Shown here piece by piece: positions 6,994 to 63,933 of a DNA stretch of 64,000 nt. Location of the stretch: NCBI RefSeq assembly GCF_039654945.1, contig NW_027361679.1:105958001-106022000 (forward strand), read 5' to 3'. The DNA is from Dendrobates tinctorius. Lineage: Eukaryota. A program made the translations under genes and the position numbers. The notes under the pieces are model-generated. The model did not search any database. It was not told the origin of the DNA and saw only the letters and a list, made by a program, of their open reading frames with translations. How positions within the stretch are numbered: the stretch's first letter is position 1; every line of letters begins with the position of its first letter.

Positions 6994-7769
6994 TAGTCAC
7001 AAAACAATGCATGCACACATGATGCAGCCATAAAATGTTGGTTTATATTATCTCCTATTTGGTACATTTTATTTAAATTAAAAACATTTTTTGAGCTGTT
7101 TTTATATTGAATGCACAACCATAGGATTTGTTCCTTCATTTCACAGCACTTTGTTCCGTCTTTTAAAATGGTTGTGTAAATAAAAGGAAAAACTTTAATT
7201 ATTTACATGCTTCTTATTTGCTACCTTAATATGGTGAAATATTGGTAACAAAAAGCTTTCAGGATGTATACACAGTATAATGCCCCCATAGTTCTCTTAT
7301 ATGCAATATAATGAACCCCTAGATACACTATACACCACATGAGCCCACAGCTCCCTTATACACAATATGAGGAGCCAACAGTCCCCCCATATTCATATAA
7401 TATCCCCACTGTTCCCCAAACTGTCTAACACCCTTCCAGTGTGTGCGCTCCTTTAGACCGGGTTTATTTCTAGCTCTGCATATTTTTTCCTCTGTTGAGG
7501 TTCCCGGCTGGAGCTGCACCTTTTCCTTAATCACACCTGGCTGGCGCTCCTTTTTGGACTGTCTCACTTATCACCCAAACTGTATAATGACCCCAACAGT
7601 AGCCCCCAAACTGTATTATGGCTCCATAATAGTCTCCCACACTACATGAAGGCCCCCCACAGTATCAACTTATAATGGCCCCACAGTAGCCCACCCCTAT
7701 ATGAAAGCCCCATGAAGTCCATCACAGTAGCACCTACAACACTGTATGGACCAAAAAGTGGATACAGAG

Positions 7770-8400
7770 TATCCTGAACACACCACTCACAAAGAGATAT
7801 ATCATATAAAAAATAAATTGTATTAAGTTAATTCATATCATAGACAAACAAGATACAAGTAAGAGGAGGGAATGTTTACCCAAGTGAAATACACACAAAT
7901 ACAGGAATAAAGGAATGGATACAGGTAATGGTAAAGTGCAAAAATATATCAGCATATATCCACCTAGACCCATAGTGGTCTGTAAAGTGCAAAGTGCTAT
8001 ATAGAGGAAAAAATCCCCAAGCTGGTAATCACATACCCATTTAATCACCTGTTCACAGAATTCCTGGAGTCCGCCACACATTTCACCTTTTTTGCTTTTT
8101 CAAGGAAATTGTGTGTGTCATGACTTGAGACCTGTTTGATTTATATAGTAAACCCACCCAGTCATGGGCCAATCCTCCGTCGCCTACATCACCGCCGCCC
8201 CCGGGTCTCAGGTGCAGCCGCTTTCAGCACTCAATTGAGGCGTGCATGGAGGAAAACCCCCCTGATGACGTCATATCCGCATGCCACAAATGATAGAGGC
8301 CGTCGGCAAGAAGGAGGAGACTCAGGTGTGGTGCACGTGCGCGTTGCCATCTTTTTGTAGCCCGATCACCATACTTTCAGAGACTATATCTGAAGAGGCA
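7770..8400 (-). mobile_element. Possible Penelope-like 3' remnant
   Basis: Minus-strand CCTTGAAAAAGC...GTGAAATGTGT at 8105-8076 resembles a decayed PLE hammerhead tail. Boundaries are unclear. Confidence 0.25.
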
Positions 8401-9989
8401 AAACCTTTTACTTGCCGCGCCTGCAGCACATATTAAATGCAGGAATCTGGGAAAGTACCGCTGCAGTGTAGAAAGGGCCCTATAATTAACGCCATATGCA
8501 AAAGATAACATTAGAAATCGCCTAAAAGGTGAAGCACAGCAATAAAGAGCACACTCCATAACAGGTTAGTAGTGAAACATTAACCTATTCAGAAAATTTG
8601 CAGGTTGGTGACAAAGGACTCTTTTTGGAATTAAGAAACAGAGATGGGGGTGTTTTCCCTGTGGGAATTGTCTGGCATGTAATTTACATAATATTATTAG
8701 GACAAAAACCTTTACAACCACCGACGGTACCCGAGAATACACACTCTCTCACTATAACTCATTTAGAATATTTTGATCACTGATATTCTTAAGATAAAAG
8801 TGTCCTAATCGGTCAGTGTCCCCCAGGATATTTATGCCCATCACATATAGCGAACACATGCGGAATCACCGCATCCTACACATAGACTGGGTTATTTATT
8901 TTGTGGATACGGAGTGTCTCTGCAAGATAAATAGAGATGCTGCGATCGATAAAGACGCACCGCGTGTCTGTAATTTTGGGTTCTTCCCCAAATCTAGTGA
9001 AGCATCTGTTAGGCGTCGGATTCCTGCAGCTGCACAGCAGGAATCCAGAGCCATACATCCTGCGGTCTCCCTTTCCGACCGCTCAGGGACCTGCACAGCA
9101 ATCTCGGCGATCCAGGTGCCCTGCTCAGACCAGCTCTCTGGGTCTGGAAGTTGCTGCCACCTCTGGACCAGCAATGGTAGCGCAACCTGCTTTGCAGGAA
9201 ACCACTCCAGAGGCTAAGTCCTCTCGCCGCGCTACTGGGCACGCCCACGAGACGATCTCCCAGTGGAGATCGGGGGTCACATGCTCAGGTCCTTGTCCTG
9301 ATCTGACTGGCCCATCTCAGAGGTCTGGAAAGTCCCGGAAGTGCATGGCTATAAAAGGCCCACATGGCCGCTCGCCCATGCACTAGTATAGGCTATACTT
9401 CCTATGTGTGAATGGTGACGGATGTATGATTCTGCTGACTGACTCATTTGAAACCCTTTCCGTCTGATATTACGCATGTGGATAGGGAACTAGAAAGATA
9501 GTCAGCACCAGTCAGTGGCAAGCTATAGGCCACAGTGCATACCGCACCTCTGCACTAGCGTCCGATGGTGTCACGCCTCACGGCACTATCGTATAGCGGC
9601 AGTAGTTACCGCCGCGCTGCAGTTAGCAGCACTTACCGGCGTCCGCGGTTGCGATGCCGCACGGTAGGTCAAGACGGACACCCACCTCTGTCTTGGGCCA
9701 TGTCCTGTGACCATATACCGTGTGTGCACGCCAGCTGAGACCTGTGAAGCTAACAGGCTCGGTGTTTATGCTTTAGGGCCTCTGTGTGTTTAACAGAGTC
9801 CACTCTGTGCACCCCGGGTGACGTTTAACCCGAGCGCAGTATGCCGCCATATAAGCGAGTCCGCCTTTGCTCAGCAGCGGTTGTTGCACCTACTGCATGG
9901 TGGACCCCAGGTTTCAAACGCACTTCCTATTTATATTTAGTGCGTTTCGCCGTCCCTAACATTATACTAGAGCCAGGGTCTGGCTAGTA

Positions 9990-12900
9990 ATGACGGACCT
10001 GCTGCATTCGGCAGCAGGAGAGCAGGTTGGCAGCTATCGAGAGCTCCACCTCAGCTGCGAATGCTATGGTAGTCGTTGCTCAGGTAGTCGCAGAGGCTGT
10101 CTCGCGCGTGCCCACACTCACGCCTATACCGACAATATCTCGCCTCCTGCTCCCCGACAAGTTTTCGGGTGACAGCGCCACCTGTAGGGGATTCGTGAGT
10201 CAGTGCTCTATCCAGCTTGAGTTACTAGTTGCACGGTTCCCTACAGAGCGGGCTAAGGTGGGGTTTATTGTTTCTCTTATCTGGCAGGGCAAAAGAGTGG
10301 GCTACGCCATTGTGGGATCCCGTGGTTCATGGGGCTACTCAGTTCCTTGCAGCTCTGAAGCAGATATTTTTGGGACCATGGATCACGCACGACACCTCTC
10401 TCCAATTATTGGCCCAAACACAGGGGTCTCTCTCAGTCAGCCATTATGCCGTCCGATTCCGGCCATTGGCTTCCGAACTGGATTGGCCCGATAAAGCACT
10501 CATCCCTGTCTTTTGGAGAGGGTTAGCAGAGCATATCAAAGATGCTCTAGCAGTCAGAGAGGTCCCCACAAGTCTGGAGGAAGTGATTGCCATCTCCACC
10601 CGCATTGGTCTCCGGTTTACGGAGCGCGGGCTGGAACGTGCGCAATCCAGACGAAGGGTTAACTTGGCTCCCACCTTCACCGAGCCGCTAAGATCTTCCT
10701 CTCAGGAGCTACATCCTCCGAACCTATGGAGGTGTCTCGCACCGGCTCCAAGCCACGTCCGGTGCGAAGCTCCGCACGTTGTTACCAGTGCCGGCTGTTT
10801 GGTCACTCGGCTAGCACGTGTCCTCTGCGGTTGGAAAAACGATCACGTCCAGTGGTCATAGGTGGTGGCCAGACAAATATGAAACCCTTTTCTCCCAAAC
10901 CGGTATTCCGAGGGACATTAGATAGTGGGGCCTCCACCTGGGAGGTAAAGGTTACCATGGATTCCGGGGCTGAGGGGAACTTTATGTCCCCGACCTTCGC
11001 CCAGAAACACGCTATTCCACTGGTGTTACTGCCCCAAACTCTGACCATCAGGGTGGTTAATGGTGCACCTTTACCATCTCAGGTGACCCACCAGACAGCC
11101 CCACTCGGGCTCTCAATCTCACCCTCTCATCGTGAGATTCTGTCCTTGTTCATTTTGCCAGATGGCATCGACCAGGTGCTTCTCGGAGTTCCCTGGCTCT
11201 GTTGTCACTCCCCTCATATTGATTGGGCTTCAGGGAATATACTGGGTTGGAGCAAGGACTGTGAGGGAAGGTACGTGAAGGGCAGTGTTCAGGTAGCTTC
11301 CACTGAAGTGCCCGCGGATCTCTCCGCGCTTCCTAAACCTTACCACCAGTACGCGGACGTCTCCTCTAAAAAATCTGCATAGACGCTCCCGCCGCACCGT
11401 CCTTACGATTGCCCGATAGATCTTCTGCCAGGCACAGAACCTCCTAGAGGCTGTGTGTATCCGCTGTCACTCCCTGAGACAGATGCTATGTCTCAATATA
11501 TCCGGGAGAACCTGGCCAGAAGTTTTATCAGAAAGTCAGTGTCGCCGGCTGGTGCAGGGTTCTTCTTCATGCAGAAGAAGAGCGGAGAGTTACGTCCCTG
11601 CATTGACTACAGAGGTCTCAACGCCATTACAGTTAAAAACAAATAACCTCTCCCGTTGATCTCTGAGCTATTTGACAGGTTGCGAGGGGCCCGGATCTTT
11701 ACGAAATTAGATCTACGGGGGGCGTACAACCTGATCCGCATTCGCGAAGGAGACAAGTGGAAGACAGCCTTTAATACCAGGGATGGCCACTATGAATATC
11801 TGGTCATGCCCTTCGGCCTTTGTAATGCGTCTGCTGTCTTCCAGGATTTCGTCAATGACGTCTTCCGCGATATGCTCTCCACCTCGGTGGTGGTCTATCT
11901 GGATGATATCCTCATCTTCTCGCCAGATTTGACCTCCCACCGGAGAGACGTCTGCTGGGTCTTCGACCGTCTTCGGGTGAACTCTCTTTTCACCAAGCTG
12001 GGGAAGTGCCAGTTTGAGCAGGAGTCCTTGCCGTTCCAGGGCGACATCATCTCAGTCCAGGGGTTGGCTATGGATCCGGCCAAACTGCAAGCGGTAATGG
12101 ACTGGTAGGAACCACACTCAAAGTGGTGCAGCGCTTTCTAGGGTTTGTCAACTATTACCTCCAGTTCATACCTCACTTCTCCACACTGGTAGCTCCTTTG
12201 GTTGCTCTCACAAAGAAAGGAGCTAATCCTAACGCTTGGTCTGAACAGGTCTCCAAGGCCTTCTCGTCTCTAAAATCCCATTTTGCTGGCGCTCCCATCT
12301 TACACCGTCCTGATGTGGATAAACCGTTTATCCTGGAGGTGGATGCCTCTTCCGTCGGTGCAGGAGCAGTCCTTTTCCAGAAGGATGCTCAAGGTCGGAA
12401 GCATCCCTGCTTCTTCTCTAAGACCTTCTCACCGGCGGAGAAGAATTACTCCATTGGGGACAGGGAGCTTTTAGCAATGAAGTTGGCCTTTTCCGAGTGG
12501 AGACATCTCCTGGAGGGAGCCCGGTTTCCCTTCCAGGTGTATACGGATCATAAAAATCTGGTCTATTTACAAACGGCCCAGCCGCTTGAACTCTCGTCAA
12601 GCTAGGTGGTCGCTCTTCTTCTCCCGCTTCCGCTTCACCTTGCACTACCTCTCTGGAGACAAGAACGTCCATGCGGATGCTCTCTTGCACTCGGTGGTCT
12701 CAGCGGAGGAAGGGGAGGCTGAGCCACGGTTAATTCTCCCTCCGCAGAGTTTTACGACCGTGGCTCCAGTTGCTCTCGAATCATTGCCACCGGGCAAGAC
12801 CTTCGTGCCTCCTCATCTACGGCCGGAGGTTCTCGCCTGGGCGCACGCGTCCAGGGTGGGTGGTCACTTTGGCAATAAGCGGATCACAGAACTCCTGGCA

Positions 12901-14033
12901 AGGTCGTATTGGTGGCCGCACAAGACTCGAGACACTAAGGAATACATACAAGCATGCGTCTCGTGTGCACGGAACAGGTCCTCTAGACAGAGGCCGGCTG
13001 GGTTATTGTACCCTTTGCCGGTGGCGGATAGACCTTGGGAGATGGTTGGCATGGATTTTGTGGTTGGCCTGCCCAAGTCTGGTGGCAGTACGGTCATCTG
13101 GGTGGTCACTGACCATTTTTCTAAAATGGTGCATCTGGTGCCACTTGCACGGTTGCCTTCTGCTCATGGTCTTGCCACACTGTTAATAAAACATGTATTC
13201 CGTCTGCATGGCATGCCGGACAAAATTGTCAGTGATCGAGGTCCCCAGTTTGCGTCCCGGTTTTGGAGGGAGTTCTGCAGCCTACTCAGCATTGAGCTAA
13301 ACCTGTCCTCCGCTTACCATCCCGAGACGAACGGCTTGGTTGAGAGAGCCAACCAAACCTTGGTCACGTACCTGCGGCATTTCGTCTCTGCCAGGTAGGA
13401 TGACTGGGCACCCTTGCTACCATGGGCTGAATTTGCCCTGAATAATGCAGTGGCTGATTCCACTGGTCAGACGCCGTTCCTTCTAAATTACGGCCAGCAT
13501 CCGCACGTCCCTGTCCCGATGCCAGTGTCCTCCGCTATCTCCAGGGTGGCAGACAGGGCAGTGGAGGCTTGCGACATTTGGGATCGCACTCATAATGCAA
13601 TTCGTGCCTCTAAAGAGAGAATGAGGGCATCCGCTGGCTCTCTGCTCGAAACATCAAGCTGCGGGCCGAGTCCTCCAAGTTCGCGCCGCAATACATCGGA
13701 CCTTTTAAGGTTCTCGAGCGAATCAGCTCGGTGGTCTACCGCCTGGCTCTTCCTCCACATTTAGCCATTTCTGATGTTTTTCATGTGTCCCTTCTCAAAC
13801 CTGTTCACATGGCCCGTCTCTCTGAGTCATCTGCCGGGTCATCAGACTTGTCTTCGGACGAGTTTGAGGTTAACGCCATTGTGGGAGGCAGGATTGAGCG
13901 TGGCAAAAAGTTTTTATTTGGTGGACTGGAAGGGTCATGGTCCAGAGGCCCGGACCTGGGAACCTGTGGAGAACATCCACGCTCCACTCCTGATCGCAGC
14001 CTTTGAGCGTAGCGAGGCTCAGAGGGAGGGCAA
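9990..14033 (+). pseudogene. E1 gag-pol pseudogene
   Basis: Gag LPDKFSGD and CCHC knuckle CYQCRLFGHSASTC, protease MDSGAEGNF, RT YLDD, RNase H VDASSVG, integrase H-H-C-C plus SDRGPQF and ERANQTL, chromodomain EFEVNAI..YLVDWKGHGPEARTWEP. In-frame stops near 11380, 11644, 12106 and 13396, plus several frameshifts. Confidence 0.93.
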
Positions 14034-14038
14034 TGTTA

Positions 14039-14438
14039 GGCTAGTTTCACACTAGCATTTATGAGCGCAGCGACAGCCTGCGCACGGCCGCCGCTAAGCC
14101 CCACCCCCTGCCACCACAGTAGCTCCGCCCACCGGCACATGACGCTGCATGCGCCCCCTATCTTTATCACTGGGGCACAGGCTGTGCACAGTATGCGTTT
14201 GGCAGCGCATGCGTCCTTTTGACGGTGCGCCAAACGCAACCTGCTGCAGTTTGGTTGCGTCGGCGCACCGTCAACAAGGCGCATGCGCCGCCAAACGCAT
14301 ACTGCGCACGGCCTGCGCCCCCTGTGATAAAGATAGGGGACGCAGGGTGCATGCAGCGTCATGCACCGGAGCTACCGGCGGAGGCGCGGCTTAGCGTCGG
14401 CCGTCGCTGCGCTCATAAACGCTAGTGTGAAACTAGCC
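14039..14438. mobile_element. PIF/Harbinger-type (Tourist-like) MITE inserted in the E1 3' LTR
   Basis: TIR GGCTAGTTTCACACTAGC / GCTAGTGTGAAACTAGCC, TTA TSD, internally palindromic, absent from the 5' LTR. Confidence 0.92.
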
Positions 14439-15683
14439 TTAGGCGTCAGATACCTGCAGCTGCACAGCAGGAATCCAGAGCCATACATCCTGCGGTCTCC
14501 CATTCCTTTCCGACCGCTCAGGGACCTGCACAGCAATCTCGGCGATCCAGGTGCCCTGCTCAGACCAGCTCTCTGGGTCTGGATGTTGCTGTCACCTATG
14601 GACCAGCAATGGTAGTGCAACCTGCTTTGCAGGAAACCACTCCAGAGGCTAAGTCCTCTCGCAGCGCTACTGGGCACGCCCACGAGACGATCTCCCAGTG
14701 GAGATCGGGGGTCACATGCTCAGGTCCTTGTCCTGGTCTGATTGGCCCATCTCAGAGGTCTGGAAAGTCCCGGAAGTGCATGACTATAAAAGGCCCACAT
14801 GGCCGCTCGCCCATGCGCTAGTATAGGCTATACTTGCTATGTGTGAATGGTGACGGATGTATGATTCTGGTGACTAACTCATTTGAAACCCCTTCCCTCT
14901 GATATTACGCATGTGGATAGGGAACTAGAAAGATAGTCAGCACGAGTCAGTGGCAAGCTATAGGCCACAGTGCATACTGCACCTCTGCACTAGCGTTCGA
15001 TGGTGTCACAGCACTATCGTATAGCGGCAGTAGTTACCGCCACGCTGCAGTTAACAGCACTTACCGGCGGTTGCGACGCTGCACGGTAGGTCAAGACGGA
15101 CACTGACCTCTGTCTTGGGCCGTGTCCTGTGACCATATACCATGTGTGCACGCCAGCTGAGACCTGTGAAGCTAACAGGCTCGGCGTTTATGCTTTAGGG
15201 CCTCTGTGAGTTTAACAGAGTCCGCTCTGCGCACCCCGGGTGACGTTTAACCTGAGCGCAGTATACCGCCATATAAGCGAGTCCGCCATTGCTCATCAGC
15301 GGTTGTTGCACCTACTGCACAGTGGACCCCGGGCGGCGAACGCACTTCCTATTATTTATATTTAGTGCGTTCCGCCGTCACTAACAGCATCATAGTAATC
15401 TTAGTGTATGCAATCTTTTGTCTTTGCAGTAATAGAAATGCTTTAAAACATTCTCTCTCTTATTATTCTAGCATTTGGCAAATATTAATATTTATGGTAA
15501 TGGTACTTGACCAAAAAAGGGGAAAGGTTTATTCTGATTTCATGTCAGATATTGAGAAAAACATGCGTGTGTCTTTTTATGTAGTGTATGTAAACTTCTG
15601 GTTTCAACTGTAGGTAAATTTGATCATGTTTATGATGTTTTTGTTTTAACATGGCACACAATGTACCATTATTTTCATGGTAC

Positions 15684-17012: not shown

Positions 17013-18186
17013 GAATCCTATGTGCAAAAGAGTGGATGTCAGCCATCCAATTAAGTGAAGCTAATGTAAATGGTGTGATTATGGTCTGTGTGATCCTTCA
17101 CAGTTTCACAAGGATCCCTGACTGTCCAAAAAATGATGCTGATGAGGGAGAATATAGGAATAATAGCTGACCTACAACACATGTTGTCAGCCTTTTGGCC
17201 TTAAAGTGCGGGACATATTCATAAATTATTTTGTTTCACCAGAGGGATATACTCCTTGGCAAGACTATGATGTGTCTATGTTATAATAGCCTTTGTTTAC
17301 TTTATTTCGAGAAAAAACTGTTAATATGTACAAAGTGTATGATGTGTTATGAATGAGTCACCGAAGGAGGAAAAAACAAAAATATACGCTAAGTCCAGAA
17401 AACCGGAGAGGTTGGTCGCTATCGGATTGCAGACCCCTGATCCTATTCACACAACTAACAGTAGCCGTGGGGGGTTCCTACGGTGCCCTAGACCCCTCGT
17501 TCACAGCCGGAGAACTATATAAGCCTAAAGAAAGAAAGGGGAAATCTAAACTTCCCCAGAGCAGACCCCAAAGCAATAGACAGCCCCCAACATGTATTGT
17601 CGGTGAAAAGCATATGAAAACACAAACACAGACAGAAAGACAGGTTGAGCAAATGATGGGGCCCAACTAACTAAATAGGAAAGGACAGAAAAGATGCTGG
17701 CTGCAATTCGCAAAAATACTGCCAAAATAATGTCCAACACGTCTGATAGAAAAAAGGCCCTGAAGTCAGTAGACTTCAAAAACACTATATCAGCACTCAG
17801 GTATATTCTGAAGACTGAGCAAAAGATCAACTTGACCAGAGACAAAAATGGAGCTCAGCCTGTACCAACAAGGGCAGGCAGAACACAAACACTAAGTAAA
17901 CAGACAATATCTCATGGAAAAATAGGAGAGCAAATACTTAGCTTTCAGAAGACAGGTACTCAACTGGTTTGCAAGAGCTCAGAGCAGAATGGATCACCAG
18001 CACCCCTGTAGGGCGTCGGCTGCCTTATATCCACTCAGTGATTCCGGGTGTCCAATCAGGCTCCACCTGTTCAGATGACAGGTTCTTCCCAACCCAATTA
18101 ATTTCACTACCTCTCTTCATCAGCAGAGGGAGTTCATCAGACATCAACGGTGAAGGGGAAAATGAACTCACAACAGCACCTCCCCC

Positions 18187-21002
18187 TTGAGGAGGGGTCA
18201 CCGAACCCTCATCCACGCCACCAGGACAATCAGGATGGGCCCGATGAAAAGCACGAACCAATCTTTCGGCATGAATATCGGATGCAGGGACCCAAGAATT
18301 ATCCTCTTGGCCATAACCCTTCCATTTAACAAATACTGGAGTCTCCGTCTAGCCAGGCGAGAATCCAGTATCTTCTCAACCTCATATTCCACATTACCTT
18401 CCACCAATACAGGGTCAGGAGGTGCCACCACAGGAACTACTGGCTCAACAAACCTCTTTAATAGAGACTTATGAAACACGTTATGGATCTTAAATGTAAC
18501 AGGAAGAGCCAATCGAAAAGAGACAGGATTAAGAATCTCCAAAATCTTGTAAGGTCCAATAAATCTAGGTTTAAACTTTGGAGAAGCCACCTTCATAGAG
18601 ATATTCTTTGATGACAACCAAACCATATCACCCACCTTAAACTGGGGACCAATGGTCCTATGACTGTTGGAAAACCGCTGGGCCATTTCCTGGGAGAGAG
18701 ACAACTTATCCACCACTTGGTCCCAGATCTGGTGCATTCTCTCCACCACAGTGTCAACACCTGGGCAGGCAGAAGACTCCACCTGCCCTGAAGAGAATCG
18801 AGGATGAAACCCAAAGTTACAAAAAAAAAGGTGACATCAAAGTGGCAGAACTAGCTCTATTATTTAAAGCAAATTCGGCCAAGGGCAAAAATGAAACCCA
18901 ATCATCCTGATCAGCAGAAATAAAACATCTCAAAAACGACTCCAAAGTCTGGTTTGTTCTCTCCGTCTACCCATTGGTCTGAGGGTGAAACGCAGAGGAA
19001 AAGGCAACTGAATTCCCAGCTGGGAACAGAAAGTCCTCCAAAATCTAGAAATAAACTGAACTCCTCTGTCAGATACAATGTTCTCAGGAATCCCGTGCAA
19101 GCGAACCACCTGTTGCAAAAATAAGGGCACCAACTCTGAGGAAGATGGCAACTTAGGGAGTGGTACAAGATGGACCATCTTAGAGAATCTATCACAAATC
19201 ACCCAAATAACAGTCATTTTCTGAGAGACAGGCATATCAGAGATAAAATCCATTGAAATATGGGTCCATGGCCTCCTGGGCACCGGCAAAGGCATCAGCA
19301 ACCCACTAGAGCGAGAACAAGGTTTAGACCGGGAGCAAGTACCACAGGACTGCACAAAACTCCTGACATCACGAGACAAGGCGGGCCACCAAAAAGACCG
19401 ACTCACCAAATCTTTAGTACCAAAAATACCTGGATGACCAGCCAATGCAGAGCAATGAGCTTCAGACATCACTCTCTTCCTCCACTGGTCAGGAACATAC
19501 AATTTTCCAATGGGACAACGCTCAGGTTTGTCCTCCTGAAACTCTTCCAGAGCACGTCTCAAATAGGGCGAGATGGCAGAAAGAACTACCCCCTCACCTA
19601 AGATGGTAGCAGGCTTGGTCACAACAGGAGAATCAGCAAAGAAACTCCTAGAGAGGGCGTCTGCCTTGACATTCTTAGTGCCCGGAAGAAAAGAGACCAC
19701 AAAATCAAAACGTGTGAAAAACAAGGCCCACCTAGCCTGTCTAGGATTCAAGCGTTTGGCCGACTCCAGGTAAATCAAATTCTTGTGGTCAGTAAGGACC
19801 ACAACTTGATGTTTAGCTCCCTCCAACAATGTCTCCACTCCTCAAATTCCCATTTCATGGCCAACAGTTCCCGATTCCCCACATCATAGTTACGTTCAGA
19901 TGGGGAGAACTTCAGGAAAAGAAAGCACAGGGATTCATCTTAGATGTTACCGGATCTTTTTGGGACAAAACAGCTCCTGCACCAATCTCAGAAGCGTCCA
20001 CCTCTACCTGAAATGGGAGTGAGACATCAGGTTGCCGCAAAACCGGAGCAGAAGTGAACCTTCGCTTCAGCTCCTGAAAGGAAGAAACAGCCTCCGGAGA
20101 CCAATTCAACACATCAGCACCCTTCTTAGTCAAATCAGTCAATGGTTTGGCAATACCAGAAAAATTAGCTATAAATTTACGATAAAAATTAGCAAAACCC
20201 AAAAACTTCTGGAGGGCCTTCAAAGAAGTGGGCTGAACCCAATCATAAATGGCCTGTACCTCGGCTGGGTCCATTTCAATAGTTGACGGAGACAAAATAA
20301 ATCCCAAAAATGAAATCCTCTGTACCCCAAAAAGGCATTTCGATCCCTTGACATACAGGGAATTATCCCTCAAAATCCGGAACACAGTCCGAACATGTTC
20401 CACATGAGAGTCCCAATCCTTGGAAAAGATCAAAATATCATCCAGATAGATGATCAAAAATTTATCCACAAAGTCTCGGAAAATATCATTCATGAAGCAC
20501 TGGAAGACAGAAGGGGCATTAGTGAGCCCAAAAGGCATCACCAGGTACTCAAAATGTCCCTCTGGCGTATTAAACGCCGTCTTCCATTCATCCCCATGCT
20601 TACTGCGAATAAGATTATACGCCCCCCTGAGGTCAAGCTTGGTAAACCAGCAAGCACCTTTAACTCTAGAGAATAGATCAGAAATCAGGAGTAACGGATA
20701 CTGATATTTAACAGTAATTTTGTTGAGGGAACGATAGTCAATACAAGGCCTTAATGAACCATCCTTCTTGGCCACGAAAAAAAAACCAGCACCTAAGGTG
20801 AAGAGGATGGTCTAATATGACCCTTCTCCAACGACTCCTTAATATAGGATCGCATGGCCTCGTGCTCGGGTACAGATAAATTGAAAAGTCGACCCTTGGG
20901 AAATTTACACCCAGGGCTTAGCTCAATTGCACAGTCATAACTCCTATGAGGAGGCAAAGACGCAGACTCATTCTCACTAAATACATCATAAAAATCAGCC
21001 AA
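18187..21002 (-). pseudogene. E2 pol (RT, RNase H, integrase, chromodomain), frameshifted
   Basis: [26 protein letters not shown], the GPY motif FIGPYKI, and chromodomain YEVEKILDSR, spread over several ORF fragments. Confidence 0.92.
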
Positions 21003-21020
21003 ATAGTCAGGAACATCATG

Positions 21021-22226
21021 CTACTGGGGAGAGGTGGAGAAAACAGGAGCATCACTAAAGGCACACCGACAACCCCAACTCACCACAGACACAGATTTCC
21101 AATCCAAAACTGGATTATGGATTTGTATCCAGGGAAACCCCAGAACAATGCTATCATGCAGATTATGCAACACCAAGAATCTGCAATTTTCTTGATGATC
21201 TGGGGCGACCCGCATTACCACCTGGGTCCAAAACTGAGCTTTATTCTTCACCAAAGGAGTAGCATCAATACCCCTCAAAGGGATAGGCGTCCGCAGAGGT
21301 GTCATAGGAAATCCACAACGTTTAGCAAAATCCAAGTCCATCAGGTTCAGAGCTGCTCCCGAATGCACAAAAGCCTTAGCGGAAAATGTGGACAGGGAGG
21401 AGATCAGAGTAATGGCTAGAAGAAACTTAGGTTGAACACTGCCCACAGCAAATGTGTGTGCAAAACGTTTCTCTTGTTTAGGGCAGAGAGAAATAATATG
21501 CGAGTCATCTCCACAGAAAAAACACAACTTATTACGCCTTCTGAACTCCTGACGTTGCGCCCTAGACAAAACTCTATCACATTGCATAGGTTCAGACATT
21601 TGTTCAACAGGTGGCAACACCTCTCGTGCAGTTTTGCGTTCGCGCAAACGCCGATCAACCTGAATGGCTAATGACATAGAATCATCAAGACCAGAGGGAA
21701 CAGGAAATCCCACCATAGTATCTTTTACGGTTTCTGACAAACCCTTCTGAAAGAGAGCTGCCAAGGCACCATCATTCCAAGTAGTAAGGACCGCCCACTT
21801 TCGGAATTTTTGACAGTACAACTCTGCAGAATCCTGACCCTGGCTCAATGCCAACAGGGCCTTTTCAGCCTGATCAATAGCATTACATTCATCATACAAC
21901 AGCCCTAAGGCTTGAAAAAATGCGTTCACATTAGCTAGAATAGGATCATCAGGTTTCAAAGAAAACGCCCAATCCTGAGGATCGCCGCGCAGCAAAGAGA
22001 TGACAATTTTAACCTGCTGCGCGGAGCTCCCTGATGAGTTAGGCTTCAAGGCAAAAAATAATTTACAATTATTCTTAAAGTTCAAAAATTTAGACCGATC
22101 CCCAAAAAACACATCAGGAGTAGGGATCTTTGATTCAGCAACATGTGAATGAGCAAGATAGGTGGAAATTCCCCGCACTTCAGCAGCGAGCTGCTCCACA
22201 CGATCAGACAATTGCTTCATCTCCAT
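21021..22226 (-). pseudogene. E2 gag plus protease ORF (401 aa)
   Basis: PDVFFGDRSKF, CFFCGDDSHIISLC knuckle, and protease motif FVHSGA (catalytic D changed to H). Confidence 0.9.
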
Positions 22227-23634
22227 TGAGAAGAAAAAAATTCCCCCTACAGCCTCAAAGACATAGAGGAAAAAATATACACAAAAAAAAATTCCTTTTT
22301 TTTTTTTTTTTTTTTTACAATTCTTTCCTGCTATTGAGTACCCTAGAATCTGCGGTATGGCTGGTGATTCTGTTATGAATGAGTCACCGAAGGAGGAAAA
22401 AACAAAAATACAAGCTAAGTCCAGAAAACTGGAGAGGTTGGTAGCTATCGGATTGCAGACCCCTGATCCTATTCACACAACTAACAGTAGCCGTGGGGGG
22501 GTTCCTACGGTGCCCTAGACCCCTCGTTCACAGCCAGAGAACTAAATAAGCCTAAAGAAAGAAAGGGGAAATCTAAACTGCCCCAGAGCAGACCCCAAAG
22601 CAATAGACAGCCCCCAACATGTATTGTCGGTGAAAAGCAGATGAAAACACAAACACAGACAGAAAGACAGGTTGAGCAAACGATGGGGCCCAACTAACTA
22701 AATAGGAAAGGACAGAAAAGATGCTGACTGCAATCTGCAAAAATACTGCCAAAATAATGTCCAACACGTCTGATAGAAAAAAGGCCCTGAAGTCAGTAGA
22801 CTTCAAAAACACTATATCAGCACTCAGGTATATTCTGAAGACTGAGCAAAAGATCAACTTGACCAGAGACAAAAATGGAGCTCAGCCTGTACCAACAAGG
22901 GCAGGCAGAACACAAACACTAAGTAAACAGACAATATCTCATGGAAAAATAAGAGAGCAAATACTTAGCCTTCAGAAGACAGGTACTGAACTGGTTTGCA
23001 AGAGCTCAGAGCAGAAAGGATCACCAGCACCCCTGTAGGGCGTCGGCTGCCTTATATCCACTCAGTGATTCCGGGTGTCCAATCAGGCTCCACCTGTTCA
23101 GATGACAGGTTCTTCCCAACCCAATTAATTTCACTACCTCTCTTCACCAGCAGAGGGAGTTCATCAGACATCAACGGTGAAGGGGAAAATGAACTCACAA
23201 CAATGATGCCTATTTATGTGAAAAACTATACCCTCTATATCTGAAGCATAGAGTATACATTCAAAAACACAAAACTCACACACTTAACTAACATTTTAAC
23301 TTCAAACAAGTGTCATTTTTATCAAAAACAGCCATATTAAAATCATATGGCAAATTAAGGAATTATTTGTGGGCTCTGTCTTGGGACAAGGTATTGGCCA
23401 CTTGGGTAAGGGTAGGTAAGCTCATGTGGAATTTAGTATTGCATATGGCTAAACCTCCCAGAATGGCCATGTTGAACATTCCCATGTTGAGACCATTCTC
23501 CTACAGTGGGTAAGTACAAGTGGCCATATTGGGCAGGTACAGCTGGATTTGGGAAGTTTAATTGTGGTGCTTATAATTGGAGGCGTTGGTAAGGTGTTTG
23601 CTGTGGATGAGGTGATGGGATCCATGGGAGAGGT

Positions 23635-57726: not shown

Positions 57727-58572
57727 CATGTTGTTAGGGCTGGCGGAACGCACCAAGTTATAAATAATAGTAGGTGCGTTCGCAGCCCGGGGTCTACCGT
57801 GCAGAGGTGGTACACTACTGCTAGGTAATGGCGGAAGAATAGAGCGGCGTGAAAACAGTCACACGTGGGTTACATCACCCAGTGTGAACAGAAGCGAACT
57901 CTGTTGACTCACAGAGCCGCACAGTCGCTGAACGCAAATACTGGAGCCTGTTTAGCTCACAGAGCCCGGCCAAAAAGCGCACAGAAAGCGGCCACAGAAC
58001 TCTACCCCAAGGACACGAGGTTAGAGTTCCTCTAGGCCCTCTGAGCACACGGCGTCGCTGCCGCGAATGCCGCTGGCTATGGAGTGTGGAGCACGTGCAC
58101 TGAGGCGTGCCGAGTCACTGATGGGTACTAATGCCTGACTCCGACTCTGCCCTACCTACACCTAAGCCTGGGCGCTAGCAGGCTAGGCTGCACAACACAT
58201 GCGTACCAAGGGTAGGGGTTTCATAATGAGTCAGTCACCAGAGACATTCATACGTGCATACATCACTCACTCCTCACAGTCTGAAAACCCAGTGTATCCT
58301 AGCGCATGGCTGAGCGGCCAGGCAAACCTTTTATAGCCGCGAGCGTCCGGGACCTTCCTGGCTTCTCGGATGGGCCAATCCGAACAGGACCTAAGCACGT
58401 GACCTTCGATCTCCAATGGGAGATCACTCCACAGGCATGCTCAGTGGCCCGACATGAGGACTTAGTCCCTGGAGAATCTCGCTGCTGAGCAGCCTGCATT
58501 GCCATAGCTGTGCCAGAGGTGGCAGCAGCAAGCAAACCCACGGAGGTGGTCTGGGCAGAGCGCCGGGACCGA

Positions 58573-61500
58573 CTAGTTTGCTGAGCAACCTCCTCTGCGG
58601 CTGGGGAGGAATGGGAGACCGCCGGGAGCAGGGCTCGGGATTCCCACTGTGCAGCAACAGGAACCTGACCGCCTAACATTACCCCCCCTCCTAGGGCCCC
58701 CCCTCTCCGAGCCTCGCACCGCTTGAATTCCGCAATGAGAAGTGGAGCGTGGAAGTTCTCCACCGGCTCCCAGGACCGAGTCTATGGACCATGACCCTTC
58801 CAATCCACCAAATAAAAAACTTTTTGCCCCGCATCATCTTGCAACCCACAATGGCATTGACCTCAAACTCATCAGATGACAGGTCTGATGTCCCGGCAGA
58901 TGGCTCTGAAAACCGGGACATTTGAACCGGCTTAAGGAGGGACACATGAAACGTGTGAGAAATAGCCAAGTGTGGTGGAAGGGCCAGGCGGTAGACCACA
59001 GGATTGATCTGCTCGAGGACCTTGAAAGGGCCAATATAGCGCAGTGCGAACTTAGCGGATTTAGCCCGCAGCCTGATGTTTCGGGCAGAAAGCCACACTA
59101 AGTTGCCTGGGGCGAAGGTCAGAGCAGGACGCCTGTGTGCGTCAGCGGAGGCCCTCATTCTCTCCTTGGAGGCCCGGATAGCATCCTGCGTGCGAACCCA
59201 AATTTCATGTGCCTCCACCGCCCAGTCTGCCACCCTAGAGTCGGTGGATGACACGGGCATGGGCACGGGGACGCGCGGATGCTGGCCGTAATATAAGAGG
59301 AATGGGGTCTGACAGGTGGAGTCGGCCACAGCGTTGTTCAAAGTGAACTCCGCCCATGGCAGCAAGGATGCTCAGTCATCATGCCTGGCCGAGACAAAAT
59401 GTTGCAGATATGTCACCAGGGTCTGGTTGGCTCTCTCAACCAACCCATTCGTCTCGGGATGATAGGCCGAGGAGAGATTTAGCTCGATGCTGAGCAGAGA
59501 ACAGAGCTCTCTCCAGAACCGAGATGCAAACTGAGGGCCTCAGTTGCTGACAATCTTATCCGGCATGCCGTGCAGGCAGAAGACATGTTTATTAAACAAC
59601 GCTGCCAGGTCCCGTGCAGAAGGCAGCCGCGAGAGTGGCACCAGATGCACCATCTTGGAGAAATGATCGGTGACCACAAAAATTACGGTGCTGCCACTGG
59701 ACTTGGGCAGACCCACCACAAAGTCCATACAAACCATCTCCCAGGGTCTGTCTGCTATTGGCAGGGGATAGAGTAACCCAGCGGGCCGCTGCCGAGAGGA
59801 CCGATTCTGAGCGCAAGAGACACACGCCTGAATATAGTCCCTGACGTCACGGGCCATATGCAGCCACCAGTACGTCCTTGCCAGGAGATCAGAGGTCCGT
59901 TTGGTCCCAAAATGTCCCCCCACCCTAGACGAATGAGCCCAAGAGAGGACCTCCGGTCGCAGATGGGCAGGGACAAAAGTGTTGCCCAGAGGTACCGACT
60001 CGAGAGCAACCGGAGCCACGGTCCTCAGGCTCTCCGATGGGACTATCAGCCGAGGCTCCTCCTCCTCCGATGACACCACGGAGCGAGAAAGAGCGTCAGC
60101 CCGGACGTTCTTCTCCCCGGAGAGAAAATGCAGGGTGAAATGGAATTGGGAGAAGAACAAGGACCATCTGGCATGGCGAGAATTCAGCCGCTGGGCTGTC
60201 TGTAGATAGACCAATTTTTTGTGGTCGGTGAACACCTGGAAAGGGTGGAGAGCCCCCTCCAGGAGGTGTCTCCACCCCGAGAAGGCCAGCTTCATTGCTA
60301 ACAACTCCCTGTCCCCAATGGAATAATTCCTCTCCGCCGGTGTGAAGGTCTTAGAGAAGCAGCATGGGTGCTTCCGACCATACGAGTCCTTCTGGAACAG
60401 GACCGCTCCAGCACCGACGGAATAGGCATCCACCTCCAGAATGAAGGGCTTATCTACATCGGGGCGATGTAGAATGGGAGCGCTAGCGAAGTGGGATTTA
60501 ATAGAAGCGAAGGCATTGGAGACAGTTTCCGACCACAGTTTGGGGTCTGCACCCTTCTTGGTGAGGGCTACCAAGGGTGCTACCAAAGTTGAGAAATGGG
60601 GAATGAATTGGCAATAGTAATTTATGAACCCCATAAAGCGCTGCACCGCTTTGAGAGAATGGGGTTGTTGCCAATCCATCACCGCCTGTAGTTTGGCAGG
60701 ATCCATGGCCAAACCCTGGGCAGAGATGATGTAGCCAAGGAAAGGCAAGGACTCCTGCTCAAACACATATTTCTCCAACTTGGCATAAAGGGAGTTTGCC
60801 CGCAGGAGATCGAAAACTTTGCAAACATCTCTCCGGTGGGAGTCAATATCTGGAGAGTAAATGAGAATATCGTCCAGATACACTACTACAGAGGTGGTAA
60901 GCATATCCCGGAAGATATCGTTCACAAAGTCTTGGAAGACGGCTGGAGCATTACATAGCCGGAAGGGCATCACCAGGTATTCATAGTGCCCGTCTCTGGT
61001 GTTAAATGCCGTCTTCCATTCGTCCCCATCACTGATGCGAATCAGGTTATAGGCTCCCCGCAGATCAAGCTTAGTAAACACTCTCGCTCCCCATAGCCCA
61101 TCAAACAGTTCTGATATCAGGGGCAGAGGATATTTGTTCTTAACTGTTATGGCGTTAAGACCCCTGTAATTGATGCACGGACGTAATTCTCCTTTCTTCT
61201 TTTGGACAAAGAAGAATCCCGCTCCTGCCAGGGACACCGACTTCCTAATGAATCCTCTTGCCAGATTCTCCCTGATATACTGAGACATGGCCTCTGTCTC
61301 TGGGAGAGATAGGGGGTAGACTCGACCCCGAGGAGGCTCAGCACTGGGCAAGAGGTCAATAGGACAGTCGTAAGGGCGGTGAGGCGGAAGGGTCTCTGCC
61401 GCCTTCTTGGAAGAAATGTCTGCATACTGCTGATACGGCTTGGGAAGCGAGGAGAGATCTGTGGAAACCTCAGGAGGTAGCGACCTGTACGCAGTCCCTC

Positions 61501-61933
61501 AGACACCTACCCTCGCAGGACTTGCTCCGAGGATTTTTCCCGAGTACCACTCTATATGAGAGTGAAATCGTAGCCAGGGAACCCCTAGGAGGACCTGGTC
61601 GATACCTTCGGGCATAACAAGAAGAGACAGCATCTCCTGATGAGGAGACAGTGAGAGCCTCAGTGGAGCCATCTGGTGGGTGATTTGGGATGGGAGTGTC
61701 GCACCATTCACCACTCTGACAGTGACTGGTTGAGGTAGCAGGACCAGGGGAATTGCGTGTTGTTGGGCGAAGGCAGACGACATGAAATTGCTCCCCGCCC
61801 CAGAGTCCACGCAAACCTCCACAATCAGAGTGGAAGAATTGAACTCTAACACCCCTTTAAACAGGAGCTTGGAGGAGAAAGTCACTGTGTCTAGTAGGCC
61901 CCCTCCGATAACCACTAGACGTGAGCGTTTCCC
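58573..61933 (-). pseudogene. E3 pol (PR, RT, RH, IN, chromodomain)
   Basis: Protease VDSGAGSNF. A 603-aa RT-RH-IN ORF at 59540-61351 with YLDD. YIGPFKV and chromodomain EFEVNAIV. Interrupted by stops and frameshifts. Confidence 0.93.
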
Positions 61934-62800
61934 GACCACTGTGGGCACTGGTTAGCAAAGTGCCCAGTCTGCCGACAACAGAAACAGACTGGAGATACCC
62001 GTGCAGGCCGGGACTTGGACCCCGTGCGGGACACCTCCATGGCCTCTGGAGGCTCGTGCGGCTGTTCGGGAGATTCCAGCAGTCTAGCAAAGTTTGGAGC
62101 CAACCTATATCGTTGGCTGGACTTGGAGCGCTCCAGCCCTCGCTCGGTGAAGCGAATGTTAATTCAGGTGGAGACTGTAATGAGCTCCTCCAAAGTGGTG
62201 GGCACCTCCCTGGTAGCCAGGGCGTCTTTGACATGATCAGCCAGGCCTCTCCAGAATATAAGTATGCAAACCTTATCTGGCCACTCCAGCTCGGAGGCCA
62301 GAGTTCTGAAGAGGATGGCATACTGGCTGACCAGAGACGGACCCTGGGTTAGGGCCAGCAACTGAAGTGCGGTGTCATACGTGACCCGAGGTCCCAGGAA
62401 CACCTGCTTCAGAGTGAGCAGAAAATGGGTGGCACTCTGTACCAGGGGATCCCCACGCTCCCACAGCAGGGTGGCCCACTCCAAAGCCCTGCCCGACAGG
62501 AGGGAGATGATAAATCCCACCTTGGCCCGCTCAGAGGGAAATCGTGTGGCTGGCAACTCCAGGTGAATGGAGCACCGACTCACGAACCCCTGCATGATGC
62601 ACTATCACCCGAGAACTTCTCGGCAGCGGGAGGCGAGACAAGGTCGGGGCAGGGCTGGCCGTGGAGACACGGGCGACAGCCTCTGTAGCTGCTTGAACAG
62701 CGACCGAGGCAACATCCGCAGCTGAGGTGGAACGCTCTAGCGCTGCCAACCTACCCTCCAGCTGCTGGATGTACCTGTGCAGTCGTTGTTCGTCCGCCAT
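61915..62800 (-). pseudogene. E3 gag (frameshifted), ends CFCCRQTGHFANQCPQWSGNAHV*
   Basis: ORF fragments 62531-62800, 62164-62595 and 61915-62103. Homologous to E1 gag, with a CCHC knuckle. Confidence 0.9.
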
Positions 62801-63933
62801 TACTAGCCAGACCCTGGCACTAGGATAATGTTAGGGTTGGCGGAACGCACCAAATTATAAATAGTAGGTGCGTTCACAGCCCGGGGTCCACTGTGCAGAG
62901 GTGGTACACTGCTGCTAGATAATGGCGGAACAATAGAGCGGCATGAAAACAGTCACACATGGGTTACATCACCCAGTGTGAACAGGAGCGAACTCTGTTG
63001 ACTCACAGAGCCGCACAGCCGCTGAACGCAAATATGGGAGCCTGTTTAGCTCACAGAGCCCGGCGAAAAAGCGCACAGAAAGCGGCCACAGAACTCCACC
63101 CCAAGGACACGGGGTTAGAGTTCCTCTAGGCCCTCTGAGCACACGGCATCGCTGCCGCGAACGCCGCTATAGACGCTGGCTACGGAGTGTGGAGCACGTG
63201 CACTGAGGCGTGCCGAGACACTGATGGGGACTAATACCTGACTCCGACTCTACCTACAACTAAGCCTGGGGACTAGCAGGCTAGGCTGCACAACACATGC
63301 GGGGGTTTCATAATGAGTCAGTCACCAGAGACATTCATACGTGCATACATCACTCACTCCTCATAGTCTGAAAATACAGTGTATCCTAGTGCATGGCCGA
63401 GCGGCCATGCAAACCTTTTATAGCCGTGAGCGTCCGGGACCTTCCTGGCTTCTCGGATGGGCCAATCTGAACAGGAGCAGGACCTGAGCACGTGACCTTC
63501 GATCTCCAATGGGAGATCACTCCATGGGCATGCTCAGTGGCCCGACAGGAGGACTTAGTCCCTGGAGAATCTCGCTGCTGAGCAGCCTGCATTGCCATAG
63601 CTGTGCCAGAGGTGGCAGCAGCAAGCAAACCCACAGAGGTGGTCTGGGCAGAGTACCGGGACCGACGAGCTTGCTGAGCAACCTCCTCTGCGGCTGGGGA
63701 GGAAAGGGAGACCGCCGGGAGCAACAGGAACCCGATGCCTAACACATGTTATGTCCCCCCATATATTTCCCCACAGCTATCCCTTAGTTCCCACAGCCAC
63801 CCTTTTGTGTATACGTCCCCACAGCCAGCCTCACTTGTATATCTCCCCATAGTTAGCCACATGTTTACACATCAAGACAGCCAGTTCCACAGTATTTGTC
63901 CTCACAACCAGCCCCATGTTAATATGTCCCCAC

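Follow-up and report, generated by a model that had tools for sequence, protein, structure and literature searches.

Complementarity between the predicted transcript start and the primer-binding site of a fossil sushi-type chromovirus in Dendrobates tinctorius suggests self-primed reverse transcription in its active ancestors

The LTR retrotransposon E3, located on the minus strand of the 64-kb stretch of Dendrobates tinctorius DNA analysed here (the window), raises the question of how an element of this kind could have started its reverse transcription. As the original prediction had already pointed out, no tRNA-type primer-binding site (PBS; TGG...) is found beside its 5' LTR; the first TGG occurs ~20 nt downstream, inside the gag start region. 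According to that prediction, the site present there is a perfect 11-nt complement of the 5' end of the element's own transcript, and the family would prime reverse transcription in the manner of Tf1 of fission yeast. PMC7175516 and PMC4600332 describe that the Tf1 mRNA pairs through its first 11 bases with a site beside the 5' LTR and that RNase H cuts between bases 11 and 12, while PMC4600332 and PMC6317226, citing Butler et al. 2001 (J Mol Evol 52:260), implicate or describe self-priming in Tf1/sushi elements from fungi to vertebrates. The background given with the prediction agrees with these papers, both on the first 11 nt and RNase H of Tf1 (PMC7175516) and on the proposal for vertebrate sushi elements (PMC4600332, PMC6317226).

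The complementarity itself proved to be exact. The minus strand reads GCACTAGGATA at 63392-63382, the reverse complement, over all 11 positions, of the PBS TATCCTAGTGC at 62827-62817, as predicted, and each of the two sequences occurs once in the window. The pairing stops at 11 nt, with no extension on either side. The 5' LTR ends in ...CCCTAACA at 62829 and is followed by a single spacer T (62828) between its terminal CA and the PBS. The two paired segments are separated by 554 nt, in keeping with the predicted loop of about 550 nt. The only TATAAA of the LTR lies within the TATAAAA at 63422-63416, whose first T stands at -30 from 63392, again as predicted, leaving 23 bases between TATAAAA and GCACTAGGATA; Pol II typically starts at about this distance from a TATA box. 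The base preceding GCACTAGGATA is T, which gives a pyrimidine at -1 and G at +1. Judged by its distance from the TATA box, position 63392 is thus the predicted transcript start of E3, and the RNA would begin with the 11 nt of 63392-63382, the proposed self-primer. When the E3 LTR was shuffled with its dinucleotides preserved, a match of at least 11 nt to a site starting at most 4 nt from the LTR end was obtained in 9 of 20,000 shuffles (p ~4.5e-4). The analytic expectation for such a match is 9e-4 anywhere in the LTR and ~1.5e-5 if a position 20-35 nt after the TATA box is also required.

The borders of E3 were set by direct repeats together with the LTR-LTR alignment. The 5' LTR (62829-63744, minus strand, TGTTAGG...CCTAACA) is 916 nt and the 3' LTR (57732-58678) 947 nt long, the latter carrying its copy of the 11-mer as GCGCTAGGATA at 58305-58295. 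The element is flanked by the target-site duplication ACATG, found at 63745-63749 on the 5' side and again after the 3' LTR at 57731-57727, and the polypurine tract GGAGGGGGGGTAA (58679-58691) directly precedes the 3' LTR. The internal region (58679-62800) was delimited from ORFs, Pfam matches and alignment and consists of several ORF pieces covering gag, protease, reverse transcriptase, RNase H, integrase and a chromodomain remnant; the gag start codon (ATG at 62800) and the first codons (62784-62800) begin 16 nt past the PBS. Along the minus strand the Pfam matches follow the order Retrotrans_gag, aspartyl protease, RVT_1, RNase H, integrase and SH3_Tf2-1, and in gag the matches to Ty3_capsid and to the PEG10/RTL-type DUF4939 remain just below the Pfam cut-offs (28.3 versus 29 bits for DUF4939). 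The alignment with the chromodomain-bearing relative P0010 reaches the Chromo region of that protein (956-1005), where E3 is frameshifted. The closest proteins are from Ranitomeya imitator (90% identity), followed by other frogs (56-74%) and many fish chromoviruses (~50%); 'Gypsy retrotransposon integrase-like protein 1' and 'Transposon Tf2-9 polyprotein' are among the names of the nearest ones. Domain content and these names suggest a sushi-type Ty3/gypsy chromovirus placed with the Tf1/sushi group. As judged from its broken ORFs and from LTRs that differ by 6.5% over their aligned positions, E3 is an old, dead copy, so that any statement on the use of self-priming applies to its active ancestors. 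Neither AATAAA nor ATTAAA is present in the E3 LTR (62829-63744, minus strand), whose sequence therefore gives no position for the R/U5 border or the poly(A) site. Two other pairs of direct repeats in the window, 41993-42355/54403-54766 (78%) and 3840-4029/5521-5712 (92%), may belong to other repeats or elements.

Two further elements in the window have the same arrangement. E1 (9007-15386, plus strand, target-site duplication GCATC) is 73% identical to E3 and has TATAAAA at 9350, the start site GCACTAGTATA at 9380-9390 and the PBS TATACTAGAGC at 9963-9973. It differs from E3 in a compensatory manner at two partnered positions, with T for G at position 8 of the start site and A for C at position 4 of the PBS, and one mismatch is left, at position 3/9. 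E2 (17345-23202, minus strand, LTRs at 23202-22371 and 18175-17345) represents a third family, with LTRs unrelated to those of E3; its start site GCTGGTGAT at 23028-23020 follows GATATAAGG, and its PBS ATCACCAGC at 22368-22360 begins 2 nt past the LTR.

Relatives outside the window were taken from contigs encoding the nearest proteins; their LTRs were defined by self-comparison, and the reverse complement of the sequence downstream of each LTR was then sought within that LTR. Eight elements, from four other frogs and a cichlid, were obtained in this way. Three are from R. imitator, two of them with the start site GCGCTAGTATT, facing the PBS AATACTAGCGC at locus L001 and the PBS AATACTAGCAC, with one CpG-type mismatch, at L003, and the third (L007) with GGCTTCCTGT and ACAGGAAGCC. 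Phyllobates terribilis contributes one element with GCCCGAGCAA and TTGCTCGGGC (L002) and, on the minus strand of the same locus, a second family with GTCGGTGAAA and TTTCACCGAC but no recognisable TATA box. The start site and PBS are GCCTGATCTT and AAGATCAGGC in Mixophyes fleayi (L004), GCTGAGCATA and TATGCTCAGC in Ascaphus truei (L005), and GCCTGAGTAT and ATACTCAGGC in the cichlid Maylandia zebra (L006). All ten elements besides E3 thus show a pairing of 9-11 nt between the PBS and their own LTR, with letters that differ. The spacer between the terminal CA of the LTR and the PBS is 1-2 nt in all eleven elements, none of which has a PBS starting with TGG. A TATA-like box with its first T at -27 to -31 accompanies 10 of the 11 start contexts (in nine of these the box is clearly TATA-like and lies at -28 to -31), and the start-site G follows a pyrimidine in every one of them. 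The R-U5 length, 564 nt in E3, ranges from 374 to 1733 nt in the relatives, the longest being that of M. fleayi, and the PBS lies 3-25 nt ahead of the gag ATG across these elements. In a cross-pairing control, each of the 10 PBSs tested matched its own LTR better than that of any other element, off-diagonal matches being 6-9 nt long.

Some of these loci have further peculiarities. Sushi-type tandem arrays with shared LTRs (LTR-internal-LTR-internal-LTR) are present at L004 11156-31564, L005 7970-18969 and L002 7225-20262, with three units at 99.9% identity in M. fleayi and two units each in A. truei and P. terribilis. At L001, ~0.8 kb of another LTR-like sequence (TGTTATG...CACAACA, ~7583-8380) is inserted in the R. 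imitator 5' LTR inside the start-site 11-mer, after its third base and with the short duplication ATGCG. Directly after the PBS, the stretch 62784-62816 of E3 (minus strand, CCAGGGTCTGGCTAGTAATGGCGGAC), which includes the gag start codon and is predicted to form a small hairpin, is almost invariant in E1 (9974-9998) and at L001 (~9006-9035), although the elements are 73-79% identical overall.

Variation within the family of E3 was assessed from assembled, unphased contigs of four public runs matching 62500-63800 with a likeness of at least 88%. Because they extend over U3 in addition to R-U5, these contigs carry no information on starts or expression. At 63385, position 8 of the start site, T accounts for 81-99% of the family contig depth, in contrast to G in E3, and at 62824, position 4 of the PBS, A accounts for 94-98%, in contrast to C in E3. 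As far as unphased contigs can tell, the two positions form a compensatory pair, and E3 would therefore represent a minority lineage altered on both sides. The covariation of start site and PBS that the original prediction had proposed as a check is accordingly seen at two levels, within the family of E3 at 63385 and 62824, and across elements, where the pairing is kept with different letters in 10 relatives and each PBS tracks its own LTR. The summed contig depth over the LTR in run X10, likely a DNA run, reaches the order of 1e5. This figure is not a copy number, yet it makes it probable that the genome contains very many repeats of the E3 family or of its LTR.

Position 3 of the start site behaves differently. 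At 63390, ~95% of the family contig depth has G, as opposed to A in E3, and no majority variant is listed in the family contigs at 62819, its partner in the PBS, so that position 3 is probably a G.U wobble in most family members (the contigs being unphased). Since both the 3' LTR copy GCGCTAGGATA and this ~95% of depth carry G, E3 probably owes its full 11/11 pairing to a CpG to CpA change (G>A) that occurred in the 5' LTR after insertion and turned the G.U wobble into an A-U pair. Both E3 (63390/58303) and E1 (9382/14817) have A in the 5' LTR and G in the 3' LTR at this CpG site; the joint chance of this, estimated post hoc from CpG decay rates, is ~0.7%. A mechanistic reading of the shared difference was dropped in favour of CpG decay, because the LTRs of a new copy should match, because G stands at this position in the 5' and the 3' LTR alike in the R. 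imitator copies, and because 24-28% of the LTR CpGs differ between the two LTRs of E3 and of E1. The common pattern is probably a coincidence at a mutational hot spot.

In the 593-nt leader of E3 (63392-62800), the duplex between the 5' end and the PBS is part of both the predicted minimum free energy (MFE) structure and the centroid (z = -2.8); with 25 nt of downstream sequence added, the predicted MFE structure of E3 is without it. Among the 10 leaders refolded with 25 nt downstream, the duplex is predicted in nine, including the 1.7-kb one, with E3 as the exception. Furthermore, U5 of E3 contains a predicted hairpin (62843-62875, minus strand) with a 9-bp stem, GAACGCACC/GGTGCGTTC, and a 15-nt loop, which ends 14 nt before the LTR end (z = -2.8 to -3.6). 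The R. imitator copies retain it, as does E1 (9923-9954), whose two LTRs both have U-A in place of one C-G pair, a compensatory change. No comparable hairpin was seen in U5 of the distant relatives, and the idea of a general family feature was dropped; the hairpin is limited to the group of E3, E1 and R. imitator. By analogy it is a possible counterpart of the U5-IR stem-loop that Lin and Levin (1998) reportedly name in their title.

Taken together, E3 is most probably the fossil of a sushi-type Ty3/gypsy chromovirus whose active ancestors began reverse transcription by self-priming of the Tf1 type, a reading to which we assign a probability of roughly 0.8. It is well supported because the same arrangement recurs with co-varying letters and because the family of E3 adds a compensatory pair of its own; the comparison thus upholds the original proposal, for the active ancestors of what is now a dead copy. 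The TATA box of the LTR would direct Pol II to start at G 63392, and the first 11 nt of the RNA (9-11 nt across elements) would anneal to the site 1 nt after U5. RNase H of the element would then cleave the RNA past the paired stretch, and the short RNA so released would prime minus-strand strong-stop DNA through U5 and R. Later plus-strand synthesis would copy the primer back into the PBS, so that start site and PBS would change together over generations. That the RNA really begins there, is cut by RNase H and then acts as primer is what we infer from sequence comparison.

The alternative that survives best, although it is unlikely, accepts the pairing as real and places the primer in trans, the 5' end of one packaged genome annealing to the PBS of its dimer partner without any 550-nt intramolecular loop. 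R-U5 lengths of 374-1733 nt in the relatives would mean very unequal loops for one conserved cis structure, and the conserved hairpin beside the PBS is confined to the closest relatives, both of which fit pairing between two molecules. On the other hand, the predicted folds close the loop in nine of the 10 refolded leaders, and in studies of Tf1 the pairing between 5' end and PBS is reportedly treated as intramolecular. A related and likewise unlikely idea is that the frog families use their primer in another way than Tf1, given loops of 0.4-1.7 kb and the probable G.U at position 3 in the family of E3; if true, this would fit priming from one packaged RNA to another, or an RNase H that accepts a looser substrate, rather than the compact 5' structure of Tf1.

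It is improbable that the complementarity acts elsewhere than in priming, for example in controlling gag translation or in packaging or dimerisation, with a tRNA fragment or another small RNA as the real primer. A duplex 3-25 nt ahead of the gag ATG could indeed affect translation. However, in all eleven elements the site lies 1-2 nt past the terminal CA of the LTR, where a minus-strand primer must end to give correct LTR ends; the eleven sites differ, each following its own LTR, and no other candidate primer site is conserved. A tRNA-fragment primer would, moreover, require a different RNA for each of the eleven sites. No tRNA genes were found by ARAGORN in the window and loci L001-L005. Standard tRNA priming through the 3' CCA end is very improbable, as the 10 elements whose downstream sequence was read all lack TGG over the first ~14 nt past the LTR, and the downstream TGG of E3 is part of the conserved gag start region and is not kept in distant relatives. 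Chance is less probable still, for although short complementarities do occur, as the off-diagonal matches of the cross-pairing control illustrate, the shuffle value is low even before the TATA distance is required, and the arrangement is found in 10 more elements with different letters.

Self-priming from the element's own 5' end, the preferred reading, places E3 beside several known systems. Tf1, like Tf2 and Tj1 of fission yeasts, shares with E3 the Ty3/gypsy chromovirus type, the lack of a tRNA PBS, the 11 nt and the position of the site beside U5. In contrast to Tf1, E3 is described here by its sequence signatures, and its R-U5 is 564 nt long, with up to 1733 nt in the relatives; the whole LTR of Tf1 is only ~0.36 kb. 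The pairing also differs from the 11 nt of Tf1 in the more distant frog and fish relatives, where it comprises 9-10 nt. For the vertebrate Tf1/sushi group, with sushi-ichi of pufferfish and its relatives, self-priming has been proposed from complementarity between PBS and 5' end (Butler et al. 2001, as cited in PMC4600332 and PMC6317226), as is done here for E3. Many fish proteins of the same domain make-up, chromodomain included, share ~50% identity with the pol of E3, and the cichlid relative carries the same signature, whereas the frog families have 11-mers of their own. The Amn-san chromoviruses of Xenopus (Silurana) tropicalis, which belong, like E3, to the vertebrate chromovirus lineage, are the most abundant and most transcribed LTR elements in frogs and mostly have a chromodomain (PMC4131045); PBS or priming is not mentioned in that paper. 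The Tcn1-clade chromoviruses of mosses and fungi have predicted self-priming and no tRNA PBS and cluster with Tf1/sushi (PMC6317226, PMC2864245), but their hosts are different and their relationship to E3 is only distant.

Self-priming is a known property of the Tf1/sushi group, including its vertebrate members, and is expected in the lineage of E3; knowledge of the mechanism itself is unchanged. What may be new, in detail though not in kind, is the record of it in frogs together with the series of natural compensatory changes. These changes, which extend across anurans, Ascaphus and poison frogs included, and to one cichlid, contribute comparative evidence for priming by the own 5' end in vertebrate sushi-type chromoviruses. 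The comparison also suggests a rule for annotation, namely a site of 9-11 nt, 1-2 nt past the LTR, that pairs with a site ~30 nt after the TATA box of the LTR, and this rule would predict where transcription starts and where U3 borders on R in these elements, which are very abundant in frogs.
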